Source: Epithemia pelagica
Taxonomy: Eukaryota; Protista; Bacillariophyta
DNA length: 64,000 nt
Direction: 5' to 3'
Assembly: GCA_946965045.2 (NCBI GenBank)
Contig: OX337234.1
Location: 2,914,001 to 2,978,000, forward strand
This document shows, one piece after another, positions 22,635 to 60,300 of this stretch. Below the pieces are notes generated by a model. That model saw only the letters and a program-made list of their open reading frames with translations, ran no database searches and had not been told where the DNA came from. Numbering within the stretch: position 1 is the stretch's first letter; every line of letters starts with the position of its first letter. The position numbers and the translations under genes are program-made.

Positions 22635-23229
22635 AACTTTTGTGAAGGAAGCATTTTCGAGATCACTACCTCGTTTGAGATTTGTTTTTCAGAGTAGGTA
22701 GATAAGGTTAATACCTCTTGATATGTTTTTTCTGACTACCTAGATAAAAGGTTTAGTGTTATATCTCTTGAGAAAAGCGCGCGAGAATGTTTGCACCGTG
22801 TTTACGGCAAACGTACATCATGATGTTCAATACCTTCTTGGTCAAGAATATTGATGGCCTGCGGTTTAGTCTTAAACTCTCTCCATTCTCGGTATCGCTT
22901 ACCGAGACGAAATCCTCTCCACGATAGCATTGCTGTTACCAGATTCTCATGAGAAAGGAGGCGTTTTGCATCCGTCGTTCGCTTCCATTCACGAGAGAGC
23001 ATGTCATGCGGAGTCAAGTAGTACAACAGTACAACCCCAAATTGACTTCTTGTTGGCTCATGTGTCGTTCGACCATCTGGGAAGAAATGACTGGAACAAT
23101 TATTGTGTCGGCTTCAAAAATTGCTTTAGAATCCCTCACGCCCCAACTTTGAAAACAGCCGTTCTGGTTGTTGTATTTCCTCGCAAATGAAGACCCTTGT
23201 TATTATCCTTGATGGCTTGAATCTTGTCT
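22635..23229 (+). repeat. Local duplication, copy A; homologous to about 24896-24939 plus 38063-38556 (copy B, split by the transposon)
   Basis: gtttgagatttgtttttcagagtaggtagataaggttaatacctcttg occurs at 22673 and 38063. Homology continues, with substitutions and small indels, to gaatcttgtct (23229 / 38556). gaagcat.ttcgagatc occurs at about 22650 and 24918. Confidence 0.9.
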
Positions 23230-24682
23230 TCTATTTCGAAACGAATGAGCTTGTTGCTCTGTTACCACTATTTTTCACAAATCTCTTGGGCACCGGTTAT
23301 CCAGGGATTCGATTTCGGTCCTTGATTGGTCGCTGTTCGTGCGACTAGCCATCTCCTGATTCAACACTACCGCTGTGTATTTCCTGATCATCAAAGGACC
23401 CTGTCTCGATCTTTCTTCGGACTTTGGCAAGAATAATGGGAAGCGCACCGCAGGCACAAGCCCAGGCTTCAAGCTCGACACCATCGGTCGATTGAACTAC
23501 GTGGTTGTTGTTATCACTGGAAAGACGAATCTGCTTCAAGTCACGGTGGAACGGACCCATTGAAATGCCAAGGGTTTGCCACTCGGCACTAAAATCGCGT
23601 TCGTCGTCGCCCATATCATCCGGGTGCTTTTGAAACCATTGGATCACGGAGTCCACAACGAACCGGACAATTTCCGCAGCTGAATCACCATCTTCTGGAG
23701 TCAACGCGAGGGCCCTTTCCATTGATAGGTACCATTGGCTGCTGTTTTGGAAAAATGGGCAGTGGAATGCACTCTCTTTTACATGAACAATCTCTCTCCG
23801 AATCAGATCTTCGAGTCTGCCGAGTGAAGAATGGGGCAACAGTACATGTTCGTGACGCAACAAACATGTACGTAGCGACTTGTACACTTGCTGAAATGTT
23901 TCGTCGAGACTATGTGAGCCTCCTTCATCCACAAAACGTTTGACGGCAACAAGAAGTGAACATGCCACGGAGTCTCCAACAGGTCGGGACATGCGTAGGT
24001 TGTCTGTCTCGTTTTCCAAAGACGGCTCGGTCTCATTTTGACCCTGAAAGCCAACACGAAAAGCCCATAAAGCTTCGTTCTTATCACAAACAACCGGCAC
24101 AGTGTCGTTATTGTCGAAAACATTTGCCTTGACATTCGTGTCGAATCTGTGCCATTGCTTCTGTGGCGGGATATTTCCCTCCAAGTGAGCCACCGCGTAG
24201 ACAGAGTTGGAGATATCCAAAATAGTCAGATCCGTTGCGTTGCTACCAATTTCATGGTAACGAACGACCCTGCGCCCGATCGATATATTGCCACCACCAA
24301 AGTTTGCGAAGCCGTGGCCGGTGATGAGTCGTATACTACAAGCAGGGAGGGGAAAAGCTTCCTCCCCAGAACGCGCTCTCGCATAAATATCTTGAAAATA
24401 CAGACGATATTCATCGGGCAGGATCGGTGTAGATCGGTCCACCACCAAATCACGAAAGACGCGGTCAAGTTGATCCACAGCCGCTCCGAGGAACCCCGGC
24501 GCCAAGGTCAATTCCACTTGAGCGGCGGGGACGTTCAACACAAACGGCGTCAACGCAATTGTGTAAAAATACCACAGATTCTCTTCATAACGAGGCAGTC
24601 CGCCATCGCTGTAGATTAGTTGAACTGTCAAGCTTTCCATGTCCAAATTCAAGAAGTGTGGCTGTTTTTGTGGATGAAGCAT
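22802..24682 (-). CDS. Uncharacterised protein; main ORF 23345-24682 plus probable 3' exons 23140-23230 and 22802-23076
   Basis: The 445-aa ORF has a globular-looking composition. A GTGAGG..CAG intron at 23077-23139 joins two downstream frames in phase (KTRFKPSRII..LG-H-GRTTHE..DVRLP*). The link to the main ORF is not resolved. Confidence 0.5.
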
Positions 24683-25342: not shown

Positions 25343-28300
25343 ATGTCGTCTGCAGTTGTACCTACGGAGAACGACGATCACGAGTCCTCACAGCCGAATT
25401 CGTCACAGTCACTCCTCGATGAAGATACTGATCAACCCGTCGCACCTCAAGCCCATACCTATCCAGATTCTGACCAACATACCAATCCACATTTCCCGCA
25501 ACCTCATGCTGATGGACACCAAGAAGCTGTCGACCATACAGCGGTAGCACAAGCTACTGTGAATCCACCAGAAACCAATCCAACCATCGATCCAATAACA
25601 CAGGAAACACAGACCGAGACGCAATTACCACTGCAACATCCTCTCAAGCAGCGTTCCCGATTCAGCTACTCGAAACGGTCTTTTGTGGCTCACGATGATT
25701 TCTGGATTCACCCCAACTTCTACGAAGAATTTCGCCGTCGGTTTCGACCGAATCTTACTGACCGCCCCCTTCGTCTTCTTGGCCGAATTGTTGAATGTCC
25801 GTCGAAGAAGAATGGAAATGTGTATGCAATTGTATGGGACAACCTTCAAATTTCCAACCTAAACATCCCACAAACCTGGATCAAGACACGGTTTGTCTCA
25901 ACACAATCTGTGAAGCAGAAGCTTCGTCACTTCATTGAAGTGTACGTTCCTCACCTGGACCCTCCAACTTTCAATAACATTCCGACTAATAGTACGGCCA
26001 ACAACGACAATCCAACCAACAACAACAATCCGACCAACAACAACAATCCAACCAACAATAACAATACTGCATCACGTTCACAAAGCCAACGTAGAGGAGC
26101 AGAGCAACCTCCTCCTTCGACCGCTGAACGAGCACAGAGAAGAGCAGCGATCAGGGACATTGCGGACGCCAGTCTTCGACGTTCTCCCCGCCGCCATGCA
26201 AGTTCATTGTCCAATCCACCATCAACTCAAGAGCGTGCACAGGGACGTGCAACTCTCATGACTGCACCAGAAGGAGGACCCTCTCCGTCCCCTCTTGAAA
26301 ATGGAGAGAACAACGATACTCCAATCAACCAAGTTGCAACACGTCTTTTTGGAAGCACAAGTACCGGTGCCTCGATGGTCACGACAAGACAGCAGCATCA
26401 AAACAACAGTACAGCCGAAGAATCTGAGGATGACAACGACTATTCCTCGGACGAAGATAACAATGGTGGCTATGATCTGGACGTGAATGACACTGTTCAC
26501 CGTAATATCGATCCACTCGACGACTACGAGGACAATGAAGAAGAGGATGGGGACATCAACAACGAAGAGGACGATACTTCTACAGCGTCCAACATTGATG
26601 AAGATCCCAACAATTCAACAAATTTGAAGGTTTTGATCGACAATTTACACTTCCACTACAAAAACATAGAGGCATCTGACAGACCTTTCTCGTGGGTCGG
26701 CCAAGAAAACCATCACCGCTCCATGTTCCGCGGTGGCGATGGTCTGAAGGTAGGGGTTGCGGATGAGTTTCAAACACCCTTTGATTGTCTCCGTGTCGTT
26801 GGAGGATTGTCCAAATCCATCATATCGGGCATGGCAGCGGCTACAAACAAATATTTCCACAAGAAGATTCGACCCAATCTTATGGGTCGCCGAGGATATT
26901 TCCACTCTCAGAAGTGGCAGGACGTCACATTACAAGAAATGACCCGTTTTCTTGGGATCATTCTCATGATGTCTTTACGACCACTCGACAGTGGCGGGTA
27001 TGCAGCGTACTTTCAGCCAAGCAACACAATGTACAGTCTTGGAACTGCCATTCCATCAGTGGAGATCCTGGATAGTGCTGGTTGGGCGACAAGGTACATG
27101 CGTCTTGCTCGGTTCCGTCAAATCAGAGGAGCTTTCCACCCAGAGTCGAAAGAGGCGGGACGAGGAGGTGACAAGTGCTTCCAACTCCGAAAACTTATCC
27201 AGGCTGTAAACGCAGCTTCAAAGAGATCCTTTCTGATCCCACAGGATCTTGCTTTCGATGAAGGTAGTATTGGTTGCCGGTCAAGGTACTGCCCGGTCCG
27301 ACAGTATAACAAGGACAAACCGGCAAAGTTTCGGGTGGACTTTTTCATTCTTGCGTCGTCCACTAGCTACGCTATTTTACACATGGACGTCTATCAGGGT
27401 AAGAATGCTACGAATTCGTACATTCGCGAGGAGGCTAAGCAACTTCCAACAACAATGAAGGCAGTCGTCAACGCCTGCTATGCTCTTGAACTCAACAAGG
27501 AAACAAGAGGATTCAGACATTTATCGTTGGATAACAGGTATGCTGCACCGCAGCTAATGGTAATTCTACGAGACCGTCTCAACGTCCTAGCTACTGGGAC
27601 TGTGCGCGTCAACCGTGTGGGATGGAGCAAAGTTCTCATGGATTTGAAGAAAACAAAGACAAACCGTGGAACCATGAAATTGGGACATGACGAAGTGAAT
27701 GGCATTGTAATTGGACAGTGGGTTGACTCAAAATGTGTCAATTTTGTCACGAGCTATGAGAATGTTGGGACGGGGAAGATCAAACGGCAGGTCGGTCCAA
27801 TCAAGATAGAGTTTCCGTGCCCCCAGCCCTTGATACGGCACCAAGACAACATGGGGGGGATTGACCATGGTGACCAAATGCGGTGCCAGATGGGCCGTTT
27901 TGCCACTCATGGACATTTTAAGAAGTGGTACAAGAAAACTGGTCTGGGCATCATGGACATTATGCTCTTGAATGCATTCATCGCTTGGAATCTCTCCGCC
28001 AGGGAACGACTTCGGTCCAGGCGTACAAAACTTACGAGGCATGATTTCTACACGTGTGTAGCCCAAGCAATGTGTAGTTATGTGGATACCGAGGAGATTG
28101 ATGCTTTGGCACGGCGGACCCAACAAAACACACGACCAACTTGTGAAGATGGTCACTACCCCATCCCTTTGGAGTGCAATAAAAAGGTTCCTTGTGTCGT
28201 TTGTTTATTGGAGTTTCGGTGGAAACGGAAGGAATTGGGAATGAAAGGACTTTTCTCGAATATTGGCCAATGTGCCAAATGTGGTATTGTCGCGCATTTA

Positions 28301-28630
28301 GTGAATTGTAAGGATGAACGAGAAAATGGATGGAAGATCCATAAGATGCCTCAATTTGCAGACCATACGTGCTTTGAGATTTTGCATTCGGTTCACGGTA
28401 AGGAGATATTCATGTGCCGTCCGGCGGAAGCGGGGATCAACTCCAGATACAAGTACACAACCAAGAAAAATCACCCTCTTGTGATGGAGTTGCGAGAGAA
28501 ACACGGCCTGTCTCCGGAGTTTACAAGGAAGAGACGATGGGTTGCATCATCAGTCTCTATGGAAGAAGAAGACGAGAGTGATAACAACAGTGGTGAGAAC
28601 AATGAAACAACAGAAATCCATGAATTGTAA
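25343..28630 (+). CDS. piggyBac-family (DDE_Tnp_1_7-like) transposase, 1095 aa, intact
   Basis: Catalytic-type motifs DLAFDEG, LSLDNRYAA and MGGIDHGDQ; upstream LQEMTRFLGIILMM and MRLARFRQIRGAFH; C-terminal Cys-rich CVVC..CAKC..AH. Confidence 0.9.
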   Translation: MSSAVVPTENDDHESSQPNSSQSLLDEDTDQPVAPQAHTYPDSDQHTNPHFPQPHADGHQEAVDHTAVAQATVNPPETNPTIDPITQETQTETQLPLQHPLKQRSRFSYSKRSFVAHDDFWIHPNFYEEFRRRFRPNLTDRPLRLLGRIVECPSKKNGNVYAIVWDNLQISNLNIPQTWIKTRFVSTQSVKQKLRHFIEVYVPHLDPPTFNNIPTNSTANNDNPTNNNNPTNNNNPTNNNNTASRSQSQRRGAEQPPPSTAERAQRRAAIRDIADASLRRSPRRHASSLSNPPSTQERAQGRATLMTAPEGGPSPSPLENGENNDTPINQVATRLFGSTSTGASMVTTRQQHQNNSTAEESEDDNDYSSDEDNNGGYDLDVNDTVHRNIDPLDDYEDNEEEDGDINNEEDDTSTASNIDEDPNNSTNLKVLIDNLHFHYKNIEASDRPFSWVGQENHHRSMFRGGDGLKVGVADEFQTPFDCLRVVGGLSKSIISGMAAATNKYFHKKIRPNLMGRRGYFHSQKWQDVTLQEMTRFLGIILMMSLRPLDSGGYAAYFQPSNTMYSLGTAIPSVEILDSAGWATRYMRLARFRQIRGAFHPESKEAGRGGDKCFQLRKLIQAVNAASKRSFLIPQDLAFDEGSIGCRSRYCPVRQYNKDKPAKFRVDFFILASSTSYAILHMDVYQGKNATNSYIREEAKQLPTTMKAVVNACYALELNKETRGFRHLSLDNRYAAPQLMVILRDRLNVLATGTVRVNRVGWSKVLMDLKKTKTNRGTMKLGHDEVNGIVIGQWVDSKCVNFVTSYENVGTGKIKRQVGPIKIEFPCPQPLIRHQDNMGGIDHGDQMRCQMGRFATHGHFKKWYKKTGLGIMDIMLLNAFIAWNLSARERLRSRRTKLTRHDFYTCVAQAMCSYVDTEEIDALARRTQQNTRPTCEDGHYPIPLECNKKVPCVVCLLEFRWKRKELGMKGLFSNIGQCAKCGIVAHLVNCKDERENGWKIHKMPQFADHTCFEILHSVHGKEIFMCRPAEAGINSRYKYTTKKNHPLVMELREKHGLSPEFTRKRRWVASSVSMEEEDESDNNSGENNETTEIHEL
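26009..26062 (+). repeat. 18-bp coding tandem repeat x3 (NPTNNN) in the transposase N-terminus
   Basis: aatccaaccaacaacaac x3 with minor substitutions. Confidence 0.85.
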
Positions 28631-29315
28631 AAGCAGCATTATATAAGTACCATAGTAGAGACAAACTTACCATCGACATGGTGGGGATTGCTTTGACAAT
28701 TCAATGATATGTTGCTTGTACCATTCGAGACATGGATAGATGACCTTCGCTGTGATGATTGCCGAAAAAATGAGACCTGTGTTTTAAGGTTAAAACACAC
28801 TCTTTTAAGGCGGTCTTAAGGGAGACAACTTATGCGAGCAGCTGGCTGTTTCCCATAAAATTTATGGGAGACAGCTATATACTATTCCGATAAGCTTAAA
28901 ACCCGTTCTTTACGAATGGCGTTAAGCACCACTTGCCATATTATCGTGTACATTTGCCCGCCATAGATTATTTACCGGTCGCACAAGCGAGCCTAGCATC
29001 CCATCGTGCTGTACGTTAAACGACCATAATGTGCTCAAGCTAATCTGGCGATACAAGAATCAAGAGGTAAACTGACGAATGAACAACTGACACACGGGTC
29101 GAATAAGCGACCGAATATCCCAAGGAGATTTCGTGCGTATCTTGAAGATCAAAGATCTACCAGTTTGCATGAACTCAACTTTGGAATGAAAGTTGATCGG
29201 GTCACTGTCTTTCAGGTTGATTGTTGGTTGAGGTGCTATACGTTGCAGGTATTGTATCTCTTCTTGTGACTATCTGAATTTTGTTTGTTGTCGACTTCGC
29301 CCTGCCACCGCCCCC

Positions 29316-32163
29316 ATGTCTTCGTCTGGCTTCTCTGCTCGCGCTTCGCTTTATCGCGATTTGCGTTCTGGTTCGCGTACTGAGCGTTCCGCTTCCCCGG
29401 TGTCTTTTCCGCCTCCTGCTCCGCCGCTCACGTCTCCTTCGGGTGAACTCGCGGTGGCTTTGTCGGACCTTGGCTTGGGGGTGGGCGTATCGACTGTGCA
29501 GGACCCTTCGGCGCGGGGCTCTCGTGGCTCTGCGTCGGCTAGTATGGGGGGGGGGGGGGGGGGATTTTGTGTCCGTGCCCTCCGGTCGTTCGTTTGGGGA
29601 CCAGTTCTTAGTGGATGCCACGATGGATCCCGGTGCGAGCACGGAAAGTCGCGAGTCCTTCTCGTTAGGCGGTCTCACGGAGACAGATTTGCTTGCGGCC
29701 ACTCTTCGCGTGGAAGCTCAAGCTGCGAATCGTTTCTCGGTGCAGGAAAGTTCGAACGAGGGACGCGAATCTTCCGCTAGTTTGTTCAAGAGTATCGTTA
29801 AACCGGAAGCGGCTAAAGCGGCTCGCGACACGAGTCAGTTTGCGGATTACGGCCTCGCGGAGACGCGAGAAGTGTCCTTCCATCCGGACGCTCGGTCCAA
29901 TCTTACGAAAGGTGAGCTTCCCGCGATTGCTGAGACTAACCCTAGTGTGAACTATCCTGCCGAGTTGCAAAATTCGGTTGCTCTATTTGCAGTTGATTTA
30001 AAGGAAGACAAGTTTTGTGGTGCAGTCGTGGGAGTTGCGGGCAAGTTCTGCCTCCATCTTAAGGGCCAGTGCCCCAAGAAATCGCATCATAAGGCATCTT
30101 CGTTCCTGGGCAGTCTTCGAGACCAAGGCATCGAAGAATGTTTGTTCATTTGCGTCCCTGTGCCGAAAGGCAATCTTAACCATGGCCAGCTTCCGACGCT
30201 TGCTTTTCAAGACCCGTTCCTGGAAACAACTTGGTTGGGTCGCTCCAAGGTTCAAGAAATGCTCCAAGCTCATAAGCCCGTATGGCTATGGTCGTCTATG
30301 TTCGCAATGCTCAGTGGCGAGATGCAGGGTCAGGAAAGGGAGCTAGCGAGTAGCGCTTTGCCAGGGACGCCTCTTTGTCACAAATCGGTAGAGCAGCTCC
30401 AAGCTGATGCAACCCAAACAGCTTTCACCCCAGCTCGTCGCTTGGAATTGGAAGACGTGGAAGTACCTTCCCCAACCAGTGAAGAGAGCGAATTGGAAGA
30501 TGTGGATCCATTGCTCGACGAAGATACTTTTAAAAATCGAGTGTCCCGCAACACGGTTACCACGGCTCAGGTACAACGCGCCACAGCGTCGGAACTCACG
30601 ACCATGCGATTGCGCCAAGCGGAGCAAAACCAACTCCTGAATGTACTTGTGGACAAGGTGAATGTCCTCAGTGGATTGTTGGGAGCTCCTCCTGAAGATT
30701 CAGGAGCCACGACGGTATGGCAAGCCATCAGCGAGTGGCATCAGAATCAAGAGAAAAAGAAGATTAACCCGGCGTTGTTGGAAGCCATCAAGGAAACACA
30801 GGCTCTCCACGGGGCCAGCTTTCAACGAATGTATGATTCAATCAATACACTGACCAACAAGCTACATGACACGAAGGGCGAGGCTATCCATTCGTCCAGG
30901 AAAGAAGTCGTAGCCATGCTCACAGGCGAGGTGAACAAAGCCATTTGGGCGGAGCTGTCGAAGGTTTCACCCACCCTCAAGGTAGCTGAGAAGTTTTTTA
31001 TTCGAGGTGGATTGTCTGAATTCGAGGAGCACATTCGACGGACGACAGCGGATGCTGTTCGAGCCGCGGGCGGCACCAATGGACAGTCATCGCTTTTCAA
31101 TTTGTCTCAAGCAGAAGTTGAAGACATCAAGCGGTTGATTGTTAAATTGGAAGAGGAAAGCGAGCTCAACAGAGTGCGCCTCACAGATATTGAAGCACGT
31201 TCAGAGAATTATACTGTCGAGATTGAGGGCAAGCAATTTTCTTCCTTGTCGCAGGTCACGGCTTTTGTTGCTTCCAACAACGTCCCTTCCTCTGTTCTGA
31301 AGTTTGTGGATGCGATCAGTCTGATGGAAAAAACCACGACGGGATCGCAGAGTTTCACGGAAAACGTGGACGTCCACTATCGCGGACAACGTTCCAACAT
31401 GGAGTCGCCCAGCGATCAAAAGGGGCTGTATTCGTTTCAGCTCATTGCACCCACGGCATTGGCCGGGACACCGGACCAGGCCCGAACTAATCCAAGAAAA
31501 CTGGCCCGAATGGACACGTATCAAAAATTCAAGGGGTCAGGGTCGAGAGACATGGGAGCGGCGAACATGATTCGGAAAATGATCGCCGACAAGTACCCAC
31601 CGTTGTTGTCTGAGATTGAAGCATCAACCATGTCTCGAGAAGCGAAAGCGATAGCGCGCTTTTTGCTGACGGAGTCTCGTAATTTTCTCGACTCTCTCTT
31701 CATATTCATGAAGGACCAAGTTGAAGATTATGGAGCCGACACCAAGCTCTCGGAGACACGTCGATGGGACCTTGTACAAAATATCACCAGAATTGTCTTT
31801 GAGGTCATTAGTCAACCAAGACGAGGTTGCAGTGAAATCACGCTCAACCAGGCGACTTCGCCAGACCGAGCTCCGGAATTGCTGTGGTCTGTTCTTCAAT
31901 CTCATCGATTGCAGAAGGAATTTCTGGACCATAATTTCAAAAACCACCCCAAGGTGGGACCGATGCTAACGCATTTCTTGCTTGATGTGGTAAGCTTCCA
32001 CGACGATGTTAATCCCATCGTAGATGATACCAAGAAAGCACTGAGTGAAGCACAACAAGCAAAAAGGAAAGTTGATGCTGTTGAAAGCCAAGTCAAAAAC
32101 TTGCAAGGACGTTTACCATCGAAGAAAGCCAAAGCGAATAAAGAAAACTCGGATCAGGCGTGA
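29316..32163 (+). CDS. Gag-like ORF1 of the YR retroelement, with an apparent 1-nt frameshift in an 18-G run (29546-29563)
   Basis: MSSSGFSARAS.. from 29316 runs to the G tract; the long frame continues DFVSVPSG... Cys/His motif C-x10-C-x6-C-x4-H (CGAVVGVAGKFCLHLKGQCPKKSH), coiled-coil segments and a C-terminal FKNHPKVGPMLTHFLL region. Confidence 0.7.
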
Positions 32164-35100
32164 GTAGAAGCCAAAGAGGCGAGGAAGAAAGATGAAGAAG
32201 GAAAAGACCTGGAGGGGCTCAGCAGAAGAGAGCAGTTCAAGGAAACGCCCATCACGGAGACCTACTCGTCTTGGATCAGGAGGCAAGTATCCCTGACTCC
32301 CGGGAACTTGCGTTTGGGAATTGTATCCGACGGGTTGCCGGCGTGGTTGTTTCTGACGGACAACTTGACCAACTGTCAGCTCCAATGGTTGACGCTTCCT
32401 GACAACCAGCAGCATTGGGAGAACTTAGTTCCCAAGAACACTGAAATACGGTGGCTAAGCACGCAACCTCCCACCAAGACAGACGCACATTCTATTGAAG
32501 ATGTGGTCATGGAACTGCCGGCTTGCGATGTTGTTGTGTTTGAAGGAAAGTATCGACCACCCAGAGCCAGCTCAGAATTCTGGAAACGTTCCACTCAAGT
32601 CGTCTTGGCACAACGCTCTCTCAGAGGCAAATCCCCAAGCAATTGGGCAGCGTCGTCACGAGCGCTTAACCATGCACAATTGGGAGGGGTGACCAACTGG
32701 AGTTGTCAATTTCATGTTTGGACGAGAAAGGACAGCGAATCGGTTTCAGCAGCGACCTTTTGGGAGGAAGAAATCTTGCAAGGCACTGATAGTTCATTCG
32801 AAGATTTGCTCGACAAGAAACAGACAGGCAAACGAGTTCGAGAGGATATTGAACCATCGTCTGAGACCAACAAAAATCAAGTGGACTGTGAAACTATCCT
32901 GAAGAAAAGAAAGAAGTTGTGGACACTACCAACAGTGTTCGGGTCCATGAGGACCAAGCGGCGTTTGACAGTGTCGGAAGTCTCGTTTTGCTTGGATGTT
33001 CCTTCTTCCTTAGCGAAAACGATGAATGAATCCACAAGTGAGGTGGTGGTGAGGGAATTGACAAGCCCCATCAAGGTTGCTGCGGCAATCGGCGCCTGCC
33101 TTGTAGAGTGGACGAAAAAACGGGATCGCACCAATGAGGAAGAGGACGACGGGTATAAATTGCCGAGTATCAAGCGAAGTCGTCTCTCAGCCGAAATGAC
33201 GACAAACCAACAGAAGAGCGAGTTGAACGCCGGAACTGTCGATCCAGTTGCAAGTATCGACAATGCATCATCCATGAGCAGGGGGCTGTTTCGAAGAGAC
33301 AGGTTGAACGACTATCGTCGCCCCAAGGACACGGGGGTCGATACCACCTCAGAGAAGGCCGTCAAGCACGACAAAGCAGCGGTCCCAGTCGACTTGTGGG
33401 ACGACCGGGTGAGGTATTTGTTGGGTCACACTCGTCTTCAAGACAACCATCGAAGAGCATTCGCCATTCTGCGATCAGCCATGCTGCGTCGCTGGAAAAG
33501 GAATGCCATCCGCTCGTGGGTTGATTGGTGGAACAAACATAGCGATAATATCAAATATAATGAACCTCGCTGGTGGAAAGTCTTGCATGAGCGAGGATGG
33601 CAAGCGTGTCGTCAAGCATTCCAAGCTGATTTCTGGAGTTGGCCCGCAGGATCAGGTGTCTTTTTCTGGCGATGGCCTCAAGAATACATCAGAGATGTGG
33701 CTCTCGGCGTCCCACCCCTCTGGACTGGGGTGCCTCGCCAGATTTTGGAGCCACAGCAAGGTTTGGGAGACGAAGAGACCATTACAAAGATCAAGGAAAA
33801 GCTTGACGACGTTCGTCTAAAGAAGTATGTGGGGCCGGGTCAATGGAAAGCCACCAGGAACTATTTCGCGGTCCCAAAGGGTGAAACAGATATTATAATG
33901 GTTTATGATGGCACCAAGAGTGGATTGAATGATTGTTTATACGCACCTTGGTTCCCTCTTCCGGATGCAGACGTGTTAGTTCGCACCTTGGACGATTCGT
34001 ACTGGTGCGTTGATAATGATTATGGGGAAATGTTCCTAAATTTTTGGATCCACCCCGGACTCCAAGAATTTAGTGGGATGGATCTCACGCCTCTATTCGG
34101 AGAAACAGAGACAGGCGAACTGTACATCGAAGGATGGTATAGATGTCCCATGGGACAAAGTCCTTCGCCATTCAATACCGTCCAGCAGACAAGGCGACTC
34201 AAGCGCGTCATGATGGGCGACCCAGGTGACGAAGAAAACGTGTTTCGGTGGTCGTCGGTACGAGTGAATCTACCAGGAACTGTGGACTACCAGCCCGGTG
34301 TGCTGTGGATAGCTAAGTATCGATCGACTGGAGAATTGGCAGCTGATGCCCATGATTATGTGGACGACTTGAGAGGAACGGGACCTACGGCCGAAGATGC
34401 ATGGCAAGTGAGTTTGCAAATTGCCAAAACAGCGTCGTTCCATGGCGTGCAAGACGCCGCCCGAAAACGACGAGAACAAACCCAGAGTCCAGGGGCGTGG
34501 GCAGGTGTAGTGTGTGGAACAGAACCACGCCGACCCTACAAAACCGTGTCCCAAGAAAAATGGGAAAAGACTAAGAAAGAAGTGGGACGTCTACGAGAAG
34601 AAATGGATCAGTTAGCTACAGCAACCCCGAAAAACACTATGAACAGTAAGACGCTTGAACAGGTGGCAGGTTTTCTCAACCATGTGGGACGAGCTTTCCC
34701 TGTTATCAGAATATATCTAAATGGCGTTTATGCCACGCTGAACAGCTGGCGACCGGATCGCGATGATGAGGGGTGGAAGATTGGATCAGACATGTTGCAT
34801 CTACAAGATCCCCTGGGCCTTGAAACTCCGAAGCGAGTTCGGATGGTCCCTCGAATGCGTTTTGACATTGAAGCCCTGGAATCCTTGACCACCGCGTCAT
34901 CACCACCACGGCGCATGTTAAGACCAGACAAACAAGGAGCCACCGCGCGCTATTTCTTTGGAGATGCATCAGGAGCTGGCTTTGGAATGTCGGGCTGGAC
35001 TCCTGGTGATCATCAAGTTGAGGTTGATTTTGGAGCATGGGACCCAAAAGCAATGCAAGGATCTTCATCCAATTTCAGAGAGCTTGCAAACATTGTGATG

Positions 35101-35967
35101 AAGATAGAACAATTGTCGGAGGAGGATCGTCTTAACTCATTGGCGGAAGTCTTTATCTTCACCGACAACATGCACGCGGAATCTGCCTTTTACCGTGGCA
35201 CAGCCAAGTTACCGGAAGTGTTGAGTCTCATGTTCCGTCTTCATCGTGTGTTGATGAAAGGAGAGGCCTTTATACACGTTGTATGGGTGGCGGGTAAAAG
35301 GATGATCACGCAAGGGACCGATGGTTTGTCAAGATCAGATCTGACGAGTGGGGTAATGCGTGGGGATGCGATGCTTGATTTCGTCCCATTACACCTCACC
35401 GCCGACCAAAGACAGCCAAGAGTCATCTCGTCTTTACTTCGTCGCTTGGTAGACGATACGGATCAAGTGCACGTATTAAAGATGAACGATTGGTTCTCAA
35501 AACCAACAGATAACGACGGAGTTTTCGTGTGGCTTCCACCTCCCTGTCTAGCCGATGTAGCGGTCTTCACGATGGCCGAGGCTTGGCATGTACGGCCGTG
35601 GAACACGCACATTTTCATCGCACCTTCACTGATGAGCGGACGGTGGCGACGGATGTTGGCTAAAGCATCCGACATGTTTTGTGTTTTGCCCTTCGAGAAT
35701 ACGATTTGGCCGAAAGAGTTAGAACACGAACCGCTAACGATTGCCTTCGCCTTTCCTCTTCTAAACAGAAATCCTTGGAGAGTTAAATTCACGGAGCTTC
35801 TCCGTGATGACCGAGATGTGTTGCGTCAGATGCACCGGAAATCTTTCGCACACGCGCGGGATTATTTGCGCAAACTATGGATATGCGCGCGGGCACTGGA
35901 AGCCATGCCTGGGGGCATATCATGCTCACTGCTATGTAGTTCCAGGAGACCAAGACCCGTTCCCTAG
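32164..35967 (+). CDS. Pol ORF: degenerate C5-DNA-methyltransferase-like domain, then RT, RNase H and a DIRS Dam-like domain
   Basis: RT motifs DNDYGEMFLNF, PMGQSPSP and DYVDDLRG (~34357). RNase H motifs FGDASG, SSNFRELAN, IFTDN and GTDGLSR. C-terminal VWLPPP..IFIAP. The frame is open from 32164, directly after the gag TGA. Confidence 0.88.
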   Translation, partial: VEAKEARKKDEEGKDLEGLSRREQFKETPITETYSSWIRRQVSLTPGNLRLGIVSDGLPAWLFLTDNLTNCQLQWLTLPDNQQHWENLVPKNTEIRWLSTQPPTKTDAHSIEDVVMELPACDVVVFEGKYRPPRASSEFWKRSTQVVLAQRSLRGKSPSNWAASSRALNHAQLGGVTNWSCQFHVWTRKDSESVSAATFWEEEILQGTDSSFEDLLDKKQTGKRVREDIEPSSETNKNQVDCETILKKRKKLWTLPTVFGSMRTKRRLTVSEVSFCLDVPSSLAKTMNESTSEVVVRELTSPIKVAAAIGACLVEWTKKRDRTNEEEDDGYKLPSIKRSRLSAEMTTNQQKSELNAGTVDPVASIDNASSMSRGLFRRDRLNDYRRPKDTGVDTTSEKAVKHDKAAVPVDLWDDRVRYLLGHTRLQDNHRRAFAILRSAMLRRWKRNAIRSWVDWWNKHSDNIKYNEPRWWKVLHERGWQACRQAFQADFWSWPAGSGVFFWRWPQEYIRDVALGVPPLWTGVPRQILEPQQGLGDEETITKIKEKLDDVRLKKYVGPGQWKATRNYFAVPKGETDIIMVYDGTKSGLNDCLYAPWFPLPDADVLVRTLDDSYWCVDNDYGEMFLNFWIHPGLQEFSGMDLTPLFGETETGELYIEGWYRCPMGQSPSPFNTVQQTRRLKRVMMGDPGDEENVFRWSSVRVNLPGTVDYQPGVLWIAKYRSTGELAADAHDYVDDLRGTGPTAEDAWQVSLQIAKTASFHGVQDAARKRREQTQSPGAWAGVVCGTEPRRPYKTVSQEKWEKTKKEVGRLREEMDQLATATPKNTMNSKTLEQVAGFLNHVGRAFPVIRIYLNGVYATLNSWRPDRDDEGWKIGSDMLHLQDPLGLETPKRVRMVPRMRFDIEALESLTTASSPPRRMLRPDKQGATARYFFGDASGAGFGMSGWTPGDHQVEVDFGAWDPKAMQGSSSNFRELANIVMKIEQLSEEDRLNSLAEVFIFTDNMHAESAFYRGTAKLPEVLSLMFRLHRVLMKGEAFIHVVWVAGKRMITQGTDGLSRSDLTSGVMRGDAMLDFVPLHLTADQRQPRVISSLLRRLVDDTDQVHVLKMNDWFSKPTDNDGVFVWLPPPCLADVAVFTMAEAWHVRPWNTHIFIAPSLMSGRWRRMLAKASDMFCVLPFENTIWPKELEHEPLTIAFAFPLLNRNPWRVKFTELLRDDRDVLRQMHRKSFAHARDYLRKLWICARALEAMPGGISCSLLCSSRRPRPVP

Positions 35968-37348
35968 AGACCTCAAACCTAAACAGTTCGAGATAGACGA
36001 GAATGGAAAGTTGGTTGAAGAAGACGAGGGATGGGAAACGACTATGGCAGAAAAGAAAGTACTGGATGCATGGTTCTGTCACGCTCGGCCAGGAGATCAC
36101 CTGATAACCCCTTTTCAATGTGAACTCTGCCATTTCAGGAACGTGTTTAAAAGAGATCCTAACATAGAGAGCGAAGAAGACAAGTGGGCGTTAAAGTGCA
36201 TTATACGCGCAAATCTAGACGCCTTCTGGGCCAGACGCACGAGTACCGTTCAAGGCAACACTCGGGAGATGGCTCGGTCAATGAGAATCCTGGAATCATT
36301 GCGAATTGCATCACCAACTTCCATCCATCGGCGAGGACCTTACCCCATTGAAGATGTGATGGGGATGATCCCGGCTATGATCTCGCTCCAGCGATCCTTG
36401 GACAAAGGACGCAATTCCAAGACCATCCATTGGGATACAATGAGAGGCGTACGGTCCACCTTCTCCAATTTCATTCACACGACTGTATCAGGAAGTCGAG
36501 GAGCGATGTTGAGCGATGGAAGAAGATCAACGCAAATTACGGAGGTTGTAGCCAATTCCTTGTGGTTTAAGCGATTCATGGACGGCTGCCATGAGAGAAT
36601 GGGTGACGTCAAAATCCAAGATGCGGCGATGTCCATAGAGTTACTTCTCGAGTTGGAGAGAATGCTTGAGTTGCAATACCAACAACTGAAAGAGAACAAT
36701 GGCGACAAATCGCTGTTTGAAGTTGTTACTTTGGGAGCTTCGCTCGTACTCGGATTTTCGAGCGCATTGCGAGGAGAAGAACTTGCACACATTCGCCTGA
36801 TGGAAACAATGGAATATACCAAGAGGGGCATAACACATCCAAAGTACCCGCACGTGTTATTAGCTCTGGAGGGGCGTTTCAAAGGACTCATTGCAAGACA
36901 AAAGCACAAGATACCGTTGGTAGAGACAACTCGCTCTGGAATCGCCAATAAGAAATGGTTGCTCCGGTTGTTTGCAGCATACGAGAAGTCAGGAGCGAGA
37001 TATGGACCATTGTTTCGTTCATCGCCTCGCGGAGAAAGAGCTGTGAGCATTCAACAATTGGACTTGTGGCTGCATGAACTGTTGATTGGATGTCAGAAAC
37101 AACACCCGGAACTATTGGGTAATGACATTGACTCGTTGTCCACTTACAGCTTTCGACGGTCTCTGCGAAGTGGCTCCACCACTCAAGCACGAAATCAAAA
37201 GGTACCCAAAGATGTGGTGGTACTCAACAACCGATGGCGGTCACAGGAACAGGCACGGTCAAGAGAAGCTCAGTCAGACATGATCGATTTGTATACTGAT
37301 GTCGTTGCGGCCCTCGCAACTCTATTACAATATTCAGAAGCTTTGTAA
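35804..37348 (+). CDS. Tyrosine recombinase (ORF3), 514 aa, overlapping the end of pol in another frame
   Basis: Catalytic-type motifs SALRGEE (R), GRFKG (K), YSFRRSLRSG (HxxR-equivalent), NRW and DLY (Tyr); N-terminal Cys/His motifs including PFQCELCHFRN. Confidence 0.88.
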   Translation: MMTEMCCVRCTGNLSHTRGIICANYGYARGHWKPCLGAYHAHCYVVPGDQDPFPRDLKPKQFEIDENGKLVEEDEGWETTMAEKKVLDAWFCHARPGDHLITPFQCELCHFRNVFKRDPNIESEEDKWALKCIIRANLDAFWARRTSTVQGNTREMARSMRILESLRIASPTSIHRRGPYPIEDVMGMIPAMISLQRSLDKGRNSKTIHWDTMRGVRSTFSNFIHTTVSGSRGAMLSDGRRSTQITEVVANSLWFKRFMDGCHERMGDVKIQDAAMSIELLLELERMLELQYQQLKENNGDKSLFEVVTLGASLVLGFSSALRGEELAHIRLMETMEYTKRGITHPKYPHVLLALEGRFKGLIARQKHKIPLVETTRSGIANKKWLLRLFAAYEKSGARYGPLFRSSPRGERAVSIQQLDLWLHELLIGCQKQHPELLGNDIDSLSTYSFRRSLRSGSTTQARNQKVPKDVVVLNNRWRSQEQARSREAQSDMIDLYTDVVAALATLLQYSEAL

Positions 37349-38031
37349 CAAAAGCAGAGAAGATTTCAAGGACGATATGGAGGGGGAAAGGATTGTACAC
37401 ATACGTGCACTCTGTCGTTTGCGAACTCACTGATGGAATAAGATGGGGTTCGAAGCTATTGGAGTTCCATGCTATTCTCACCTTGGCCGGGGGAATTGAC
37501 TTGGACGGCTTAAGCGGAGGTTCGCCCCGCGTGCTGACTCGGGACTAAACTCTTGAGGACTACCGGCTTCGGGACTCCGACGATTCTTCAGGGGGTAAGA
37601 GTTGGACTGGCCTTGACAGCGGCAGTACAGCGTCGATCTTGGTATCCATTCACACTTTGATGTTTTTGGATGCCGCTCCACTGGGAAGGAGTTCCCCTTA
37701 CCGTAATACAGCATAATCTAGACGATTATGACTGTTACTACCCAGCGTCATTCCACGACTCCAAGCCACGTTCGACCCTGTGTCAAAGGAAAGAATGCAG
37801 TTTACCTGGAAGAAATGAAAGTGCCATTATTTTGATATGCCATTCACCTATGTAACTTCTCATCCAACAGGCTTTCTTCTCCTTTACCGTTCTCACCGAA
37901 CATTTTTCATCGTGATATTTGATGTGTGCAGTGTGGGGCGGAAATGCTTGTTGGTACGGCTTCTACGGGGGCGCGCGAGCCTGATTTTGCGGAAATAAGC
38001 ACCAATGGCAAAAAATCGATGTACATTTGGT

Positions 38032-38056
38032 GGTGCTTAACTAACGCAATTTACGG
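38032..38056 (-). repeat. Right terminal inverted repeat (25 bp)
   Basis: Perfect inverted match to 24942-24966. Confidence 0.95.
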
Positions 38057-38062
38057 TAGGTA

Positions 38063-38556
38063 GTTTGAGATTTGTTTTTCAGAGTAGGTAGATAAGGTTA
38101 ATACCTCTTGGGAATGAAACGCGCGCTATAATGTTTGCACCGTGTTTACATCGGGTTCAATACAACACTGCATTTTCTTCTTGGTCAAAAATATTGATGG
38201 TATGCGATTTAGTCTTACACTCTCCGCGTTCTCGCTATCGCTTTCCGAGACGACAGCCTCTTCACGATAGCATTGTTCTTACCCGATTCTCATGAGAAAG
38301 CAGGCGTTTAGTATCCTTCGTTCGCAGCCATTCACGAGAGAACAAGTCATGTGGAGTCGAGGAGTATAACCATAGATTGACTTTGTAGGCTCATGTGTCG
38401 TTCGACCATCTGGAAAGAAATGACTGGAACAACTGTGTATGCTTCAAAAGCTGCTTAATCCATCACGCCCCAACTTTGAAAACAGCCGTTCTGGTTGTTG
38501 TATTTCCTCGCAAATGAAGACCCTTGTTATTATCCTTGATGGCTTGAATCTTGTCT
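38063..38556 (-). pseudogene. Duplicated, frameshifted copy of the 3' exons of the 22.8-24.7 kb gene (copy B)
   Basis: Colinear with 22673-23229. Deletions of about 2 nt and about 8 nt relative to copy A break the last-exon frame. Confidence 0.7.
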
Positions 38557-39806
38557 CTGTAAAAGGGAACATTGTACTCTTGTGGATTTTTCTTGGACCA
38601 AAAGATATCGTACAGGTCCATGCGGGGCGATCGACTCCCATGTCGTATCCACGTGGTTTCCCATGTTTGGGGATCCAGTTTCACAAAGGCACCCAGTGGT
38701 TCCGACCACTGGTAGGGGGACAAGGAATTTTGGGCCAACACGTCAAAAATATGGTCACGAATCTCATATCCACAGAGTTTGAGCCGTTGCCACGACCATT
38801 CAATGGATACATAGTGAATGGCGTGTTGACGCAAAAATTGTAACCCACCGGCCAATGCGGTGCATTCAAAACCCTCCACGTCAACCTTGAGAACGATTGG
38901 ACGGGAGCTGTGAGACGGAATATAGTCCAGGAGTCGATCCAATGGAATTCCCAGGGCATAGTCGTGGCCTTGTTTGAGTTGGTGGTCGTCGATCGTGGTT
39001 TTCCCTCGCTGGTCCCACTCTTGAACCGCAAAGGCACCCAAGTTTCTCTTGGCAGATTGCGTTTTGATTTCGACAACCGTGTCGGTCGCCGTGACAGCTC
39101 GACGAAACAATGTAATGGAATTGTTGTTCTGCTTGATTTCAGTCGGGGAGCCAAACACTTTTGGGTTGGCCATTAGTGTTTGGCAAATGCGTTGATAGTT
39201 TTGTGGTACTGGTTCAAAGGCAAAGACACTGTGACCCTTGGCAGCCGCTGTCAAGGCATACATTCCAATATTGCTACCCAAATCAATCAAGATGGAGTTG
39301 GAGTGTTCTTGGAGTGCCGCCATGGACAATTGCAAGGCTCCGCATTCAAAGCATCCCTCCTTGGCAATACTTGCCGAAATATACCGGTCGACGGCTGGAT
39401 CATGAATGCTCATGAGAAAGGATGGATCAGTGGACGTGGCAATCATTTGTCCCGAGGATGAGAGTTCTGGTGACGATTCAATCGTGGCACAATCGATCAC
39501 TCCATCATCGATAACCATTGTCGTGGATGCATTCGTGTCCAATTGGACTGGTTGTTGGTCCTCGACAGTATCAAAACGTTGACGAATGAATGGACCATTT
39601 TCAACCCCCATCTGTTTGCTTTGGAGAATAAGATTCATGAGCCACATGGTTGTGGTGAGGACAAGAAGAACCAGAAGTATCACCGACAACTTGTAGGGTG
39701 TGGAATGGACCTGTCGTTTTCGAACGGTTGTACTGTGGATGGCGTTTGTGGCTGCAGGAGTTCTCTCTCTTAGAACCTTGTTACGTTTCATACGGATTCG
39801 AGCCAT
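38463..39806 (-). CDS. FkbM-family SAM-dependent methyltransferase, type II membrane topology
   Basis: N-terminal TM segment LSVILLVLLVLTTTMWLM; IDLGSNIGMY, VFAFEPVPQNY and LKVDVEGFECTALAG. Confidence 0.9.
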   Translation of the reverse strand: MARIRMKRNKVLRERTPAATNAIHSTTVRKRQVHSTPYKLSVILLVLLVLTTTMWLMNLILQSKQMGVENGPFIRQRFDTVEDQQPVQLDTNASTTMVIDDGVIDCATIESSPELSSSGQMIATSTDPSFLMSIHDPAVDRYISASIAKEGCFECGALQLSMAALQEHSNSILIDLGSNIGMYALTAAAKGHSVFAFEPVPQNYQRICQTLMANPKVFGSPTEIKQNNNSITLFRRAVTATDTVVEIKTQSAKRNLGAFAVQEWDQRGKTTIDDHQLKQGHDYALGIPLDRLLDYIPSHSSRPIVLKVDVEGFECTALAGGLQFLRQHAIHYVSIEWSWQRLKLCGYEIRDHIFDVLAQNSLSPYQWSEPLGAFVKLDPQTWETTWIRHGSRSPRMDLYDIFWSKKNPQEYNVPFYRDKIQAIKDNNKGLHLRGNTTTRTAVFKVGA

Positions 39807-57388: not shown

Positions 57389-60300
57389 ATGAGTTCTGCA
57401 GCACAATTCACAGCGGCCAAGGCCATGGGGCCACAGTCGCAACGATACGGAAATCAGTACTCTCGTTGGCCAAAGAAGAGTTGGAAGAAGCGTTCAGGTT
57501 GGAGAAAGATGGACCTTTCGGTCATCTTTGAGTCCGACATTGACTGCCCCATCTGCAGGGCCAAGGCAAGAGGAATGGCCATCCCTCATCGCCCTCACCA
57601 CCCCAGATGCAGCAAAAACACAACAACAAGGGGCAAGGGAATGAACGATGGAAGAGGAGCAGAGGTAGTGGCCTCAGAAAAGGCCCAGGCTGCCCATGCC
57701 AAAGCAATCCGCAAGCAACTTACCAGTGCAGAGAGATTGTCCGCCTCCAATGTCACACAGGAGGCACTCAACACTTTCATGGAGCATCGTCCAAATTGCT
57801 CGTCGAAAAAAGCAACGACAAGAGACGCTGAAAATGAAAAAACACAATCAACTACGGAGACTACGGCAACGGAAAGTTCTACCGTTGGTGGCGAGGAAGG
57901 CGTGTATGTTCCAACAGCCGAAGATTTCAAGTTTGAGGTAATTATGCGTGTGACAGCAGTACCTACGGAGGTGCATGTCCCACGTGCTGTGCATGCGTTG
58001 GCGAGTTATGTGACCGACACGTGCCTTGGTTCTAAGCGTTGTGTTGAGAATTTGAAACCTTTCTTCACTAATATTACCGTTACTGTACCCCCCATTGCCG
58101 ACAACACGAGTGCTTTGTACGACTCGATTGTGGGACAGGAACTCCTGGTTGTTGATTGGGAGCTGTTTTTCCCCAGTCACCACTTGCGTTGTCCTCGTTG
58201 CCGGGGTAATCTCCAGCGTACGCGATCGAACTTTTCAAAAAACAAGTCCCTTTTCCCCATTTTCGCCATGTCTGGTCCCCCAAAGTATGCAATACTTATG
58301 GGATACAAGTGTGCCGGGTGCTCGGCTGCCTTCTATGCGAATGATGGAGAATTGCTCGCACGACTGCCTCCCTACATGGCTATGTGTTACCCAGTGGAAT
58401 CCAAGTATGCTAGAGGAACATCGCATCTAGCTAAAGATGCTACGAGGATTATGGAAGCATCAATGGTAACCTATGGCAATGGGGATTACATTAGTCGGAT
58501 GCTTTATGAAGGAATCAACACCTACTATGAAGACAAGACAATGAGATACTATTCTTATTGTGCTGCTACAGGAAAAGAATCAGAAGACTACGTGCAAAAG
58601 GATGGTGAGTTTCTGGTTCGCTACCCACCTTTAGGCGAGACAATCCGCCAGCTATATGATGATGGAGCAAGCTCCGAGTGGCAACCCTGGATGGTGTCTG
58701 ATAATGAGAGAAACACAAGAGAGATTCAAGGGGTTAGATGCCAGCACATGTTTGCTCACGACCACACCCACCAGGTAGTGAAAAATTATCCAAGACGCCT
58801 CAATGCAGCTGCAATGTGGACCATGGCAACAGAGACAGGAGAAATTGCTTGTGCAGTGTTAGTGCACGACACATCAGCACTCGAGTTTGCACATGCTGCG
58901 GAACAAGTGCTGAGACGTACCGGGTTTTGCCCCAAGGCCATGTACTCTGACACATGGCCTTGTGGCAAGGATTTTTGGTTGTTGTTGGTTGATGACTTGG
59001 AGGGCCGTCTTGGCCTTTTCCATTTCATACAGAGGATCACCAAGACGCTCAGACAACGGCACATTGACTTTGGGATAGCCATGAAGGAATTGTTGGATGC
59101 AATCTACGAGTACCATCCTGAAGACTTGGAGAAACTTGTTGGTTCTTTGAAAAATGGAACCATGTCAAGCTCCAAGAAACAATACACAGACGAAGAGATC
59201 AGTGAAATGATGGGAACAAAGACCTTTCGACAGAGGTACTCAAAGCACTTACGGAAGATTATTCGGGGTGGCGATACGATTGTCCTCAACTTGGAGGAGT
59301 GGAAGTGCAAATACAAGTGCACTTCCACTCCTGGCAAGCCACCAGCACGAGGCCGATTGGATCCACACTCCAATCAACCTCTTTTTACGGCCGAAACACA
59401 TCAAGCACTGGAAAACTGTAAAGAGAAGGCAAAGTTCCTTGCTGATCCCTTGCCCGTGGAGAAAATGTATCGTGAGATACCTCCATCACCAAGATCAAGC
59501 AACCAGCTAGTGGAGTACGTACCTTTGAGAGGAGAGAGTAAGCTCGAGAGCTTTCATGACAATTTGACGCATTTTGCCAACTGTGGCATGCGAGAAACTC
59601 TCGCAGATGCTTTGAATTTGGCAGGCACGGCCCAGTTTAACAGGGCAATTCGTCACAAGATGAGAATCATGACGAAGTCTCAAGAAGAACGTTCAGTGGT
59701 GCCTGCAGGATGGGAAATGGTGGTGAGTTTTGGTAACGCATGCAAAACAAACATGATCAATATACTTGCCTCGATGTCTGGAGCTTCTCGTCCTCCCTTT
59801 CCAGAGGTTGAGAAGCTTCCAGAAGATACGGGAGAACGGTTTTTCTCCGAGTACCTGGAAACGAGAAAAGAAATCACACAACAAGTTCCAAAGCATCCAC
59901 TCAACGATCGATGCCAGTGCCGAAAATGTGCGAGCAACAAGAAGAGGTTGCCGCATGACACGTCCATTCCATTGTTGGGTTTGGCAGAGGAGGAGTCAGA
60001 GGTCGAAGATGAAATCCAACAAATACAACAACCACAGACACAGCCAGAAACACAACAACAGACACGGCAAGAAACACAACAACAGACACAACAACAAGAA
60101 ACAGCACAAGCACAGGCAATCAGTAGCAATAAGAGAAAGGAAAGAGAGGGAGAAGAAAAAGAGAGCGACGATTTGGATGAGAACAACATCAGCAACAAAA
60201 AGCAAAAGGTTACAAACAACAGCGAAGCCTTACCAACAACAACGATGGCAGCAACAAATCAATCAGCAGCGACAGTGCAGGATCAACAACAACAACACAA

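Follow-up and report, generated by a model that had tools for sequence, protein, structure and literature searches.

A degenerate C5-cytosine-methyltransferase-like fold at the start of Pol in a tyrosine-recombinase retrotransposon family of diatoms

The stretch of DNA analyzed here (the window) is 64,000 nucleotides of the diatom Epithemia pelagica (contig OX337234.1 of assembly GCA_946965045.2, forward-strand positions 2,914,001 to 2,978,000), and positions are counted from its first letter. An 8.8-kb retroelement copy of the tyrosine-recombinase (YR) type lies on the plus strand at 29024 to 37825 and encodes a gag-like open reading frame (ORF1), Pol, and a third frame, ORF3; all features of the element given below are on this strand. 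The bounds were set by comparison at the DNA level with two sister copies (L001 and L002, both from one ENA assembly), as the blastn match to each ended there. The Pol frame (32164 to 35967, 1267 amino acids) has no internal stop and opens directly after the TGA that ends gag. An earlier inspection of the letters, here called the sequence-only reading, had proposed that Pol begins with a degenerate C5-cytosine methyltransferase (C5-MTase) fold, and the peptides quoted in its support were all found in the plus-strand frame that opens at 32164. The placement at the start of Pol stood, and the proposed span, 32164 to 33100, gave way to a slightly narrower one: a domain of 273 amino acids at 32305 to 33123, corresponding approximately to residues 48 to 320 of the Pol frame and defined by structure prediction, fold search and family conservation. 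Residue numbers below are those of the domain.

The domain was modeled with AlphaFold2 from an alignment with 50 relatives. The resulting model was confident (predicted local distance difference test [pLDDT] 92.6, predicted template-modeling score [pTM] 0.90), and all five models fell between pLDDT 91.5 and 92.6. The secondary structure began with strand-helix-strand-helix-strand; there followed a helix, strand 4, another helix, strand 5, the strand 6-7 hairpin, a small lobe of mixed structure and finally four helices. We take this order to be that of a class-I methyltransferase (MTase) lobe followed by a target-recognition lobe and by a returning helix at the C-terminus. The model thus had the hairpin, the small target-recognition lobe and the returning helix of the two-lobe class-I C5-MTase fold. 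When the model was compared with the PDB by Foldseek, ranks 1 to 39 were exclusively C5-cytosine methyltransferases (E 9e-8 to 6e-4, probability 1.00), led by Schizosaccharomyces pombe Dnmt2 (E 9.3e-8) and M.HhaI (2.6e-7) and including a C5-carboxymethyltransferase, human DNMT2, M.HaeIII, EhMeth, prophage and Shigella Dcm-type enzymes, DNMT3A/B, MET1 and DNMT5. Over these 39 matches the query-normalized TM-score was mostly 0.44 to 0.59 (one at 0.37), and the alignments, mostly 310 to 460 columns long, covered both lobes at 8 to 13% identity. The first match outside the C5 enzymes, Dim1, came at rank 40 with a TM-score of 0.28. The structural comparison with M.HhaI and other C5-MTases for which the sequence-only reading had called therefore produced a confident model with C5 enzymes at every one of the first 39 ranks.

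Several results weigh against reading the domain as a relative of C5-MTases. PF00145 gave no match at E ≤ 1 with the domain of the window copy or with that of any of 50 relatives, the domain was blank against the PDB (phmmer and hmmsearch), PHROGs and NCBIfam, and hhalign of the whole domain alignment against a Dcm alignment was likewise blank. The TM-scores of the fold matches are moderate, at 0.5 to 0.6. Because the relatives of Escherichia coli Dcm found by homology search were all at least 79% identical, too shallow for a comparator profile, eight phage C5-MTases were added by tblastn and hhalign was then run in local mode. The best local match of the trimmed domain profile paired domain residues 219 to 272 with Dcm residues 400 to 456 (motifs IX to X; E 0.007 to 0.012, probability 5%), and a second paired residues 55 to 85 with Dcm 149 to 179 (the motif IV region; E 0.3). 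At hhalign probabilities of 5% or less, the sequence link to C5-MTases is weak, and as no profile joined the domain to PF00145 or to a solved MTase, homology rests on the predicted structure together with weak local profile matches. Those matches, weak as they are, are nonetheless co-linear with the fold and fall on motifs that the sequence-only reading had named.

One way in which such results could arise is if the fold match were an artifact, caused by a generic Rossmann-like fold or an overconfident AlphaFold2 model, with the likeness of the motifs due to chance. The blank profile searches, the hhalign ceiling of 5% and the low identity to the fold matches speak for an artifact. The leading matches, however, are C5-MTases of bacterial, fungal, plant and animal origin, other Rossmann MTases score far worse, the alignments extend over both lobes of a model on which five predictions agree, and the local profile matches independently find the same motifs in the same order. 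We consider an artifact very improbable. Resemblance between short motifs would by itself be weak evidence; here it exceeds chance, as the family is conserved, the top fold matches are C5 enzymes only, and the best hhalign match lies on the motif IX-X stretch. We conclude that the domain is, to judge from its predicted structure, very probably a genuine homologue of the C5-MTase fold, though one that has diverged extremely far.

The domain belongs to a conserved family. An exhaustive phmmer search with residues 48 to 329 of the Pol frame returned 48 proteins at E ≤ 1e-3, with 24 to 60% identity, and a profile of the domain searched against the collected relatives placed it N-terminally in 83 of the 85 Pol relatives of at least 1100 amino acids. 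Conservation was scored over 93 near-full-length copies, 17 to 98% identical to the window copy (median, 23%), and column statistics for the domain refer to this alignment throughout. R219 and E225 were conserved in 100% of the copies and H123, G127, G128, D231 and P255 in 99%; W114 (98%), K257 (97%), P233 (95%), G175 (92%), and G5, W14 and T130 (91% each) were also kept. Synonymous sites were saturated between the window copy and its sister copies, and the rate of synonymous substitution (dS) could be estimated only between L001 and L002. The rate of nonsynonymous substitution (dN) relative to the sister copies was 0.18 in the domain, 0.77 in the linker that follows it and 0.04 in the reverse transcriptase (RT), and the dN/dS ratio of the domain was 0.09 (L001 versus L002). 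Its conservation and its low dN and dN/dS indicate that the domain is a selected, ancestral part of Pol. The test for purifying selection that had been suggested for aligned homologues was thus positive, and the column statistics join the model and the fold search in supporting a C5-MTase fold, in degenerate form, at the beginning of Pol.

The motifs of C5-MTases were located by comparison with Dcm, for which the positions cited are invariant columns of a natural sequence (P0052): F93-x-G-x-G97, P176-C177, E224-N225-V226, Q274-x-R-x-R278, R401..E406 and G435-N436. Strand 1 and its loop (LRLGIVSDGLPAW; 32308 to 32346, DSSP strand at residues 2 to 7) occupy the position of motif I, where G5, P12 and W14 are conserved and G-x-G is not, since G.G occurs in 2 of the 93 copies and G10 in 51%. 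Acidic residues after strands 2 and 3, which serve in cofactor binding, are not conserved in the family. Strand 4 and its loop (DVVVFEGKYRPPRAS; 32527 to 32571, DSSP strand at 76 to 79) stand at motif IV and read FEGKYRPP in the window copy; Pro-Cys is present in 2/93 copies, and Cys makes up no more than 18% of any loop column. E-[NQ]-[VIL] of motif VI was found after strand 5 in none of the 93 copies, with an acidic share there of at most 8%. The absence of Pro-Cys and ENV, as claimed earlier, therefore holds in the window copy, and across the family Pro-Cys survives in two copies and ENV in none.

Strand 6, the hairpin and strand 7 (LNHAQLGGVTNWSCQFHVWTR; 32665 to 32727, DSSP strands at 114 to 122 and 133 to 141) hold the position of motif VIII and carry a family signature, H123-x3-G127-G128-V-T130; Q.R.R of motif VIII occurs in the hairpin in 0/93 copies. 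The motif IX-like helix (RRLTVSEVSFCLDVP; 32959 to 33003) contains R219, E225, D231 and P233, and its Arg...Glu pair is kept, as hhalign aligns R219 and E225 to R401...E406 of Dcm. At the motif X position (SPIKVAAAIG; 33064 to 33093), P255-x-K257 replaces Gly-Asn, and GN occurs in none of the 93 copies. Hence, of six catalytic or cofactor motifs, five fail and only the Arg/Glu pair of motif IX survives. It tells against the comparison that motifs I, VI and VIII were assigned by secondary-structure position only, and the equivalences drawn by the sequence-only reading for motifs I and VIII stand in that positional sense, Q.R.R being absent throughout.

The loss of the S-adenosylmethionine (SAM) Gly loop, the strand-2 acidic residue, Pro-Cys, ENV, QxRxR and Gly-Asn indicates that the domain is almost certainly not a cytosine methyltransferase, and from these motif losses it is predicted, with good confidence, to be catalytically dead for C5 methylation. 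Two copies count against this prediction: P0007 and P0193 (L015) read FEGPCRPP exactly where hhalign pairs the sequence with P176-C177 of Dcm. Neither copy has any other canonical motif, and their Pro-Cys may be what is left of the active site of the ancestor. A further objection is that the invariant polar residues H123, T130, E225, D231 and K257 could form a new active site. The domain would then still be an enzyme, with a changed chemistry or substrate (RNA, an RNA-DNA hybrid or another base) served by the His/Asp/Glu/Lys set. Near-invariance of these residues across 17 to 98% identity does bespeak strong selection, and the C5-MTase fold is known to host other reactions, as the C5-carboxymethyltransferase and the tRNA-methylating Dnmt2 are themselves among the top fold matches. 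Neither the Gly loop nor the acidic residues that follow strands 2 and 3 are conserved, however, no conserved nucleophile is present, and R219, E225 and D231 belong to the helix of motif IX, whose role in canonical enzymes is structural. We consider a re-tooled enzyme unlikely.

The position of the domain within the element bears on its role. ORF1 extends from 29281 to 32163, with a first ATG at 29623 (846 amino acids), and ends in a TGA (32161 to 32163) that is in frame with Pol; in L001, L002, L014 to L018 and L023, Pol is likewise preceded by a homologue of ORF1. In eight of eight loci (the window, L001, L002 and L014 to L018), the gag TGA is followed by Pol in the same frame with no intervening stop. 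In these eight loci, the Pol frame has its first Met 12 to 116 codons downstream, and in the window it is codon 116, inside the MTase-fold domain. The leader peptide that precedes the domain (32164 to 32304) includes PITETYSSWIRRQV at 32248 to 32289 and is conserved in P0002, P0004 and P0005. That the leader is conserved and yet contains no Met implies translation as a Gag-Pol fusion, and programmed read-through of the TGA is the simplest reading that the sequence suggests. Read-through of the conserved in-frame TGA would yield a Gag-Pol fusion in which the MTase-fold domain is placed immediately after Gag.

Our preferred explanation as a whole, to which we give a probability of about 60%, is that the domain is a pseudo-enzyme kept as a noncatalytic, probably nucleic-acid-binding, module of the Gag-Pol fusion. 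The near-invariant residues of the diatom family cluster at three places, the strand 6-7 hairpin, the helix of motif IX and the position of motif X, all of which line the DNA-facing cleft in real C5-MTases, and the capacity to hold nucleic acid is inferred from that clustering. The domain would clamp element RNA, cDNA or target DNA for the RT or the recombinase without catalysis. Taken by itself, the nucleic-acid-binding role is tentative, a proposal from the predicted structure to which we give slightly less than even odds.

The same location and conservation can be viewed differently, with the domain as a mere structural spacer or assembly domain of Gag-Pol that aids multimerization or particle incorporation and binds no ligand. 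It does sit exactly at the Gag-Pol junction, and many of its conserved positions are Trp, Gly or Pro, as is usual for the core of a fold. Invariant charged or polar residues of surface type (R219, E225, D231, K257 and H123) are nevertheless hard to attribute to folding alone, and dN is far lower in the domain than in the adjacent linker. A pure spacer therefore seems improbable to us.

A third possibility is a protein-protein module analogous to DNMT3L, a host regulator that pairs with DNMT3A/B. Such a module would bind, recruit or titrate host DNA methyltransferases or chromatin readers and so act as a decoy or regulator. DNMT-fold proteins that are dead and yet conserved do exist, and DNMT3L chains were among the MTase-fold structures in the PDB fold search made with the C-terminal domain of Pol; like DNMT3L, the diatom domain has the C5-MTase fold, has lost the catalytic motifs and is still conserved. 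Furthermore, retrotransposons have captured epigenetic domains repeatedly (PMC5890265; bioRxiv 10.64898/2026.05.21.726589). Unlike DNMT3L, the diatom domain belongs to the polyprotein of a retroelement and has no known partner. Its conserved residues, as placed by secondary-structure position only, lie on the cleft side and not at a known dimer interface. The ratio of observed to expected CpG in the element was 0.97, on a par with the flanking host sequence (0.86 to 0.94) and showing no depletion, so that neither a special history of methylation nor methylation-linked decay gains support. We regard a DNMT3L-like role as doubtful, and the functions proposed by the sequence-only reading (methyl-CpG sensor, decoy or integration targeting) as speculation.

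The sequence-only reading had also placed a Dam-like domain at the end of Pol. The peptides on which that claim was based are present (VWLPPP at 35527 to 35544 and IFIAP at 35611 to 35625), and the C-terminal domain, annotated at 35368 to 35934 with W-x-P-P-P at 35530 to 35544, is a five-stranded alpha/beta domain that is marginally phage-Dam-like. AlphaFold2 modeled the stretch from 35299 to the end of Pol at pLDDT 86.9 as a five-stranded sheet with flanking helices. A fold search of the PDB gave nothing below E 0.07; its list, at E ≥ 0.07, consisted mostly of SAM-dependent methyltransferases, including the N6-adenine enzymes RlmJ, M1.HpyAVI and CAPAM. In BFVD, the best named matches were phage DNA N-6-adenine-methyltransferases, weak at E 3.7e-3 to 9e-2 and TM 0.3 to 0.42. 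No Pfam family, DAM included, matched the Pol C-terminus, and none matched that of six full-length relatives even at E ≤ 10. The DAM domain of retrotransposons has a five-strand sheet flanked by helices and a conserved Asn-Pro-Pro triplet, and its sheet resembles the TR-2 to CD-2 part of phage and bacterial Dam (bioRxiv 10.64898/2026.05.21.726589). In the diatom family, the Trp of the motif is conserved at 100% and Pro-Pro(-Pro) at 88 to 98%, and the Asn before the prolines is found in 4%, with Leu in the window copy. We conclude that a Dam-like C-terminus is plausible but marginal, its peptides being present and its fold support marginal while a Pfam match is missing and the Asn is lost. If Dam-like, the C-terminal module also looks inactive.

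A bolder reading would see in this large, previously unannotated family of diatom retroelements two MTase-derived pseudo-enzymes in one Pol, with a dead DNMT fold N-terminally and a dead Dam-like fold C-terminally, that act as a joint epigenetic reader or decoy system. If that were so, the pair would bind host methylation factors or DNA, whether methylated or not, steering integration or evading silencing, and would be a transposable element (TE)-encoded counterpart of DNMT3L-type regulation. We think it a long shot.

DNMT domains have been described before in the Pol proteins of SymbioDIRS-Dnmt3, SymbioLINE-DNMT and KnitGypsy-Dnmt3, where they are detectable with hidden Markov models (HMMs) and keep their key residues, and the SymbioDIRS-Dnmt3 domains of Symbiodinium methylate CG de novo (PMC5890265). 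With the dinoflagellate SymbioDIRS-Dnmt3, the diatom element shares a C5-MTase fold in the Pol of a YR retroelement, repeats in the order A-coding-B-A-B, an RT too diverged for Pfam and a DNMT domain subject to purifying selection. The diatom domain differs from that of SymbioDIRS-Dnmt3 in escaping detection by Pfam and in the family-wide absence of the SAM loop, Pro-Cys, ENV, QxRxR and GN. EpiLTRs are long terminal repeat (LTR) retrotransposons of Cymbomonas and Euglena that carry both DAM and DNMT (bioRxiv 10.64898/2026.05.21.726589), and they too combine a cytosine-MTase-type and an adenine-MTase-type module in one retroelement, the latter being marginal in the diatom. EpiLTRs, however, are of Ty3/Gypsy type, with chromodomains and recognizable, apparently intact MTase motifs, whereas the diatom element is of YR type, has no chromodomain, carries its DNMT-like module N-terminally and in degenerate form, and has a marginal DAM-like module without the Asn of the Asn-Pro-Pro pocket. 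With M.HhaI and Dcm (PF00145), the diatom domain has in common the overall fold and the R-x-L-T-x-x-E pattern of motif IX, and it differs from them in that it does not match the PF00145 profile and lacks five of six motifs for catalysis or cofactor binding. Relative to PAT-like and Ngaro elements (PMC4157794), Pol has an additional N-terminal extension of approximately 500 amino acids, comprising the C5-MTase fold and a conserved pre-RT region, an in-frame TGA separates gag and pol, and Pfam recognizes no protein of the element.

A literature search found no published account of a diatom Pol family with a DNMT fold, and diatoms were not mentioned in the searched text of either study of retrotransposon methyltransferases (PMC5890265; bioRxiv 10.64898/2026.05.21.726589). 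What is new relative to known DNMT-carrying retrotransposons is thus a module that is found in diatoms, N-terminal, poor in motifs, invisible to profiles and paired with a possibly Dam-derived one. TE-captured active DNA methyltransferases (Symbiodinium, Klebsormidium and EpiLTRs) are a recent discovery that bears on how host epigenomes are manipulated; here, persistence of the C5-MTase fold in a retroelement polyprotein under purifying selection, without the catalytic hallmarks, points to a nonenzymatic use of the fold. As HMM surveys miss the family (more than 400 relatives lack Pfam matches), MTase-derived modules in mobile elements may be much commoner than such surveys indicate. The family offers a DIRS-order counterpart to the dual-MTase EpiLTRs and a natural series for the transition from enzyme fold to pseudo-enzyme.

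The assignment of the element to the YR retrotransposons, also made by the sequence-only reading, was upheld by three lines of evidence: split direct repeats in L001, weak but repeated RT profile matches, and an invariant R..K..RxxR..W..Y set in ORF3. L001 has the layout A1-coding-B1-A2-B2, in which A1 equals A2 (262 nt, 100%) and B1 equals B2 (445 nt, 99.6%). The window copy contains the A1 terminal repeat segment at 29024 to 29286, which matches A1 and A2 of L001, and the B1 segment at 37388 to 37825, which matches B1 and B2. The A2-B2 unit is absent 3′ of the window copy (37826 to 38062, compared with L001 15509 to 16236), though all three ORFs are open, and a repeat search within the window copy found neither terminal nor inverted repeats, the full layout being seen only in L001. 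A 209-nt terminal repeat is present in L014. Split direct repeats in the order A-coding-B-A-B define PAT/Ngaro-type members of the DIRS order (PMC4157794; PMC5890265), and the sister copy L001 displays this A1-B1-A2-B2 trait. The combined features support, at the level of sequence, a PAT/Ngaro-like (DIRS-order) tyrosine-recombinase retrotransposon of diatoms.

Relatives of Pol number more than 400, are 39 to 97% identical from the RT to the C-terminus, and come from diatom assemblies and aquatic metagenomes, as do the full-length relatives; those with species names are from the diatoms Epithemia clementina and Mayamaea pseudoterrestris, which supports a diatom host. The precomputed Pfam field was empty in all of these more than 400 relatives, and Pfam matched none of the three ORFs of the window element; Pfam searches of sets of 50, 6 and 5 relatives likewise led to no named family. 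Short matches of approximately 300 amino acids were considered as stand-alone host genes and rejected, the Epithemia example, a 323-amino-acid "hypothetical protein," being a fragment call within a full gag-pol-ORF3 element.

Outside the N-terminal domain, Pol continues with a charged linker (33124 to 33354) that is poorly conserved, with amino acid identities of 0.34 to 0.43 and dN of 0.76 to 0.77 relative to the sister copies. A strongly conserved pre-RT region of approximately 170 amino acids follows (33355 to 33870; KAVKHDKAAVP ... FFWRWP; dN/dS 0.07), in which no family is recognizable. The putative RT core (33871 to 34600) includes YVDD at 34357 to 34368 and was assigned from its Y-x-D-D columns, invariant or nearly so in 44 relatives, and by a PADLOC RT model that matched at the corresponding position in four of five relatives, weakly (E 7.6e-4 to 0.03); Pfam and PDB sequence searches were blank for the RT. 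An RNase H-like region at 34936 to 35343 contains FFGDASGAGFG (34954 to 34986) and FIFTDN (35152 to 35169), its D/E/D/D columns are invariant, and Pfam RT_RNaseH_2 matched weakly in relatives (E 0.012).

ORF3 (35804 to 37348, ATG at 35807) overlaps the 3′ end of Pol in another frame and encodes a putative tyrosine recombinase. R323, K360, R452-x-x-R455, W478 and Y497 are invariant in seven homologues, with YR-like spacing. Pfam, PHROG and the PDB gave no match to ORF3, nor did hhalign against two phage integrases.

Other copies of the element differed in their state. In L001 (10001 to 15015), Pol was called approximately 190 amino acids short and ORF3 in three pieces, despite terminal repeats that are 100% and 99.6% identical, and in L002 Pol was called in at least two pieces. 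L017, a 9.4-kb JGI metagenome contig, has ORF3 upstream of gag, a permuted order such as might be expected if tandem or circular copies had been assembled.

A 1095-amino-acid ORF (25343 to 28630, plus strand) directly upstream of the retroelement encodes a piggyBac-type transposase domain (DDE_Tnp_1_7, E 1.5e-42). A direct repeat of approximately 500 to 560 nt (22673 to 23229 and 38063 to 38556), 81 to 100% identical in pieces, flanks a 15-kb block that contains, besides the retroelement and the piggyBac-like ORF, a 445-amino-acid ORF without annotation (23345 to 24682, minus strand). On the right, the repeat copy extends into the 3′ end of an ORF for an FkbM-type methyltransferase (38463 to 39806, minus strand), and the arrangement as a whole could have arisen by segmental duplication or by a composite insertion. 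Farther along the window, a 1101-amino-acid ORF (57389 to 60694) without a Pfam match contains the first of two stretches of approximately 1.5 kb (58102 to 59607 and 62212 to 63720) that are 65% identical to each other and are probably tandem paralogues.

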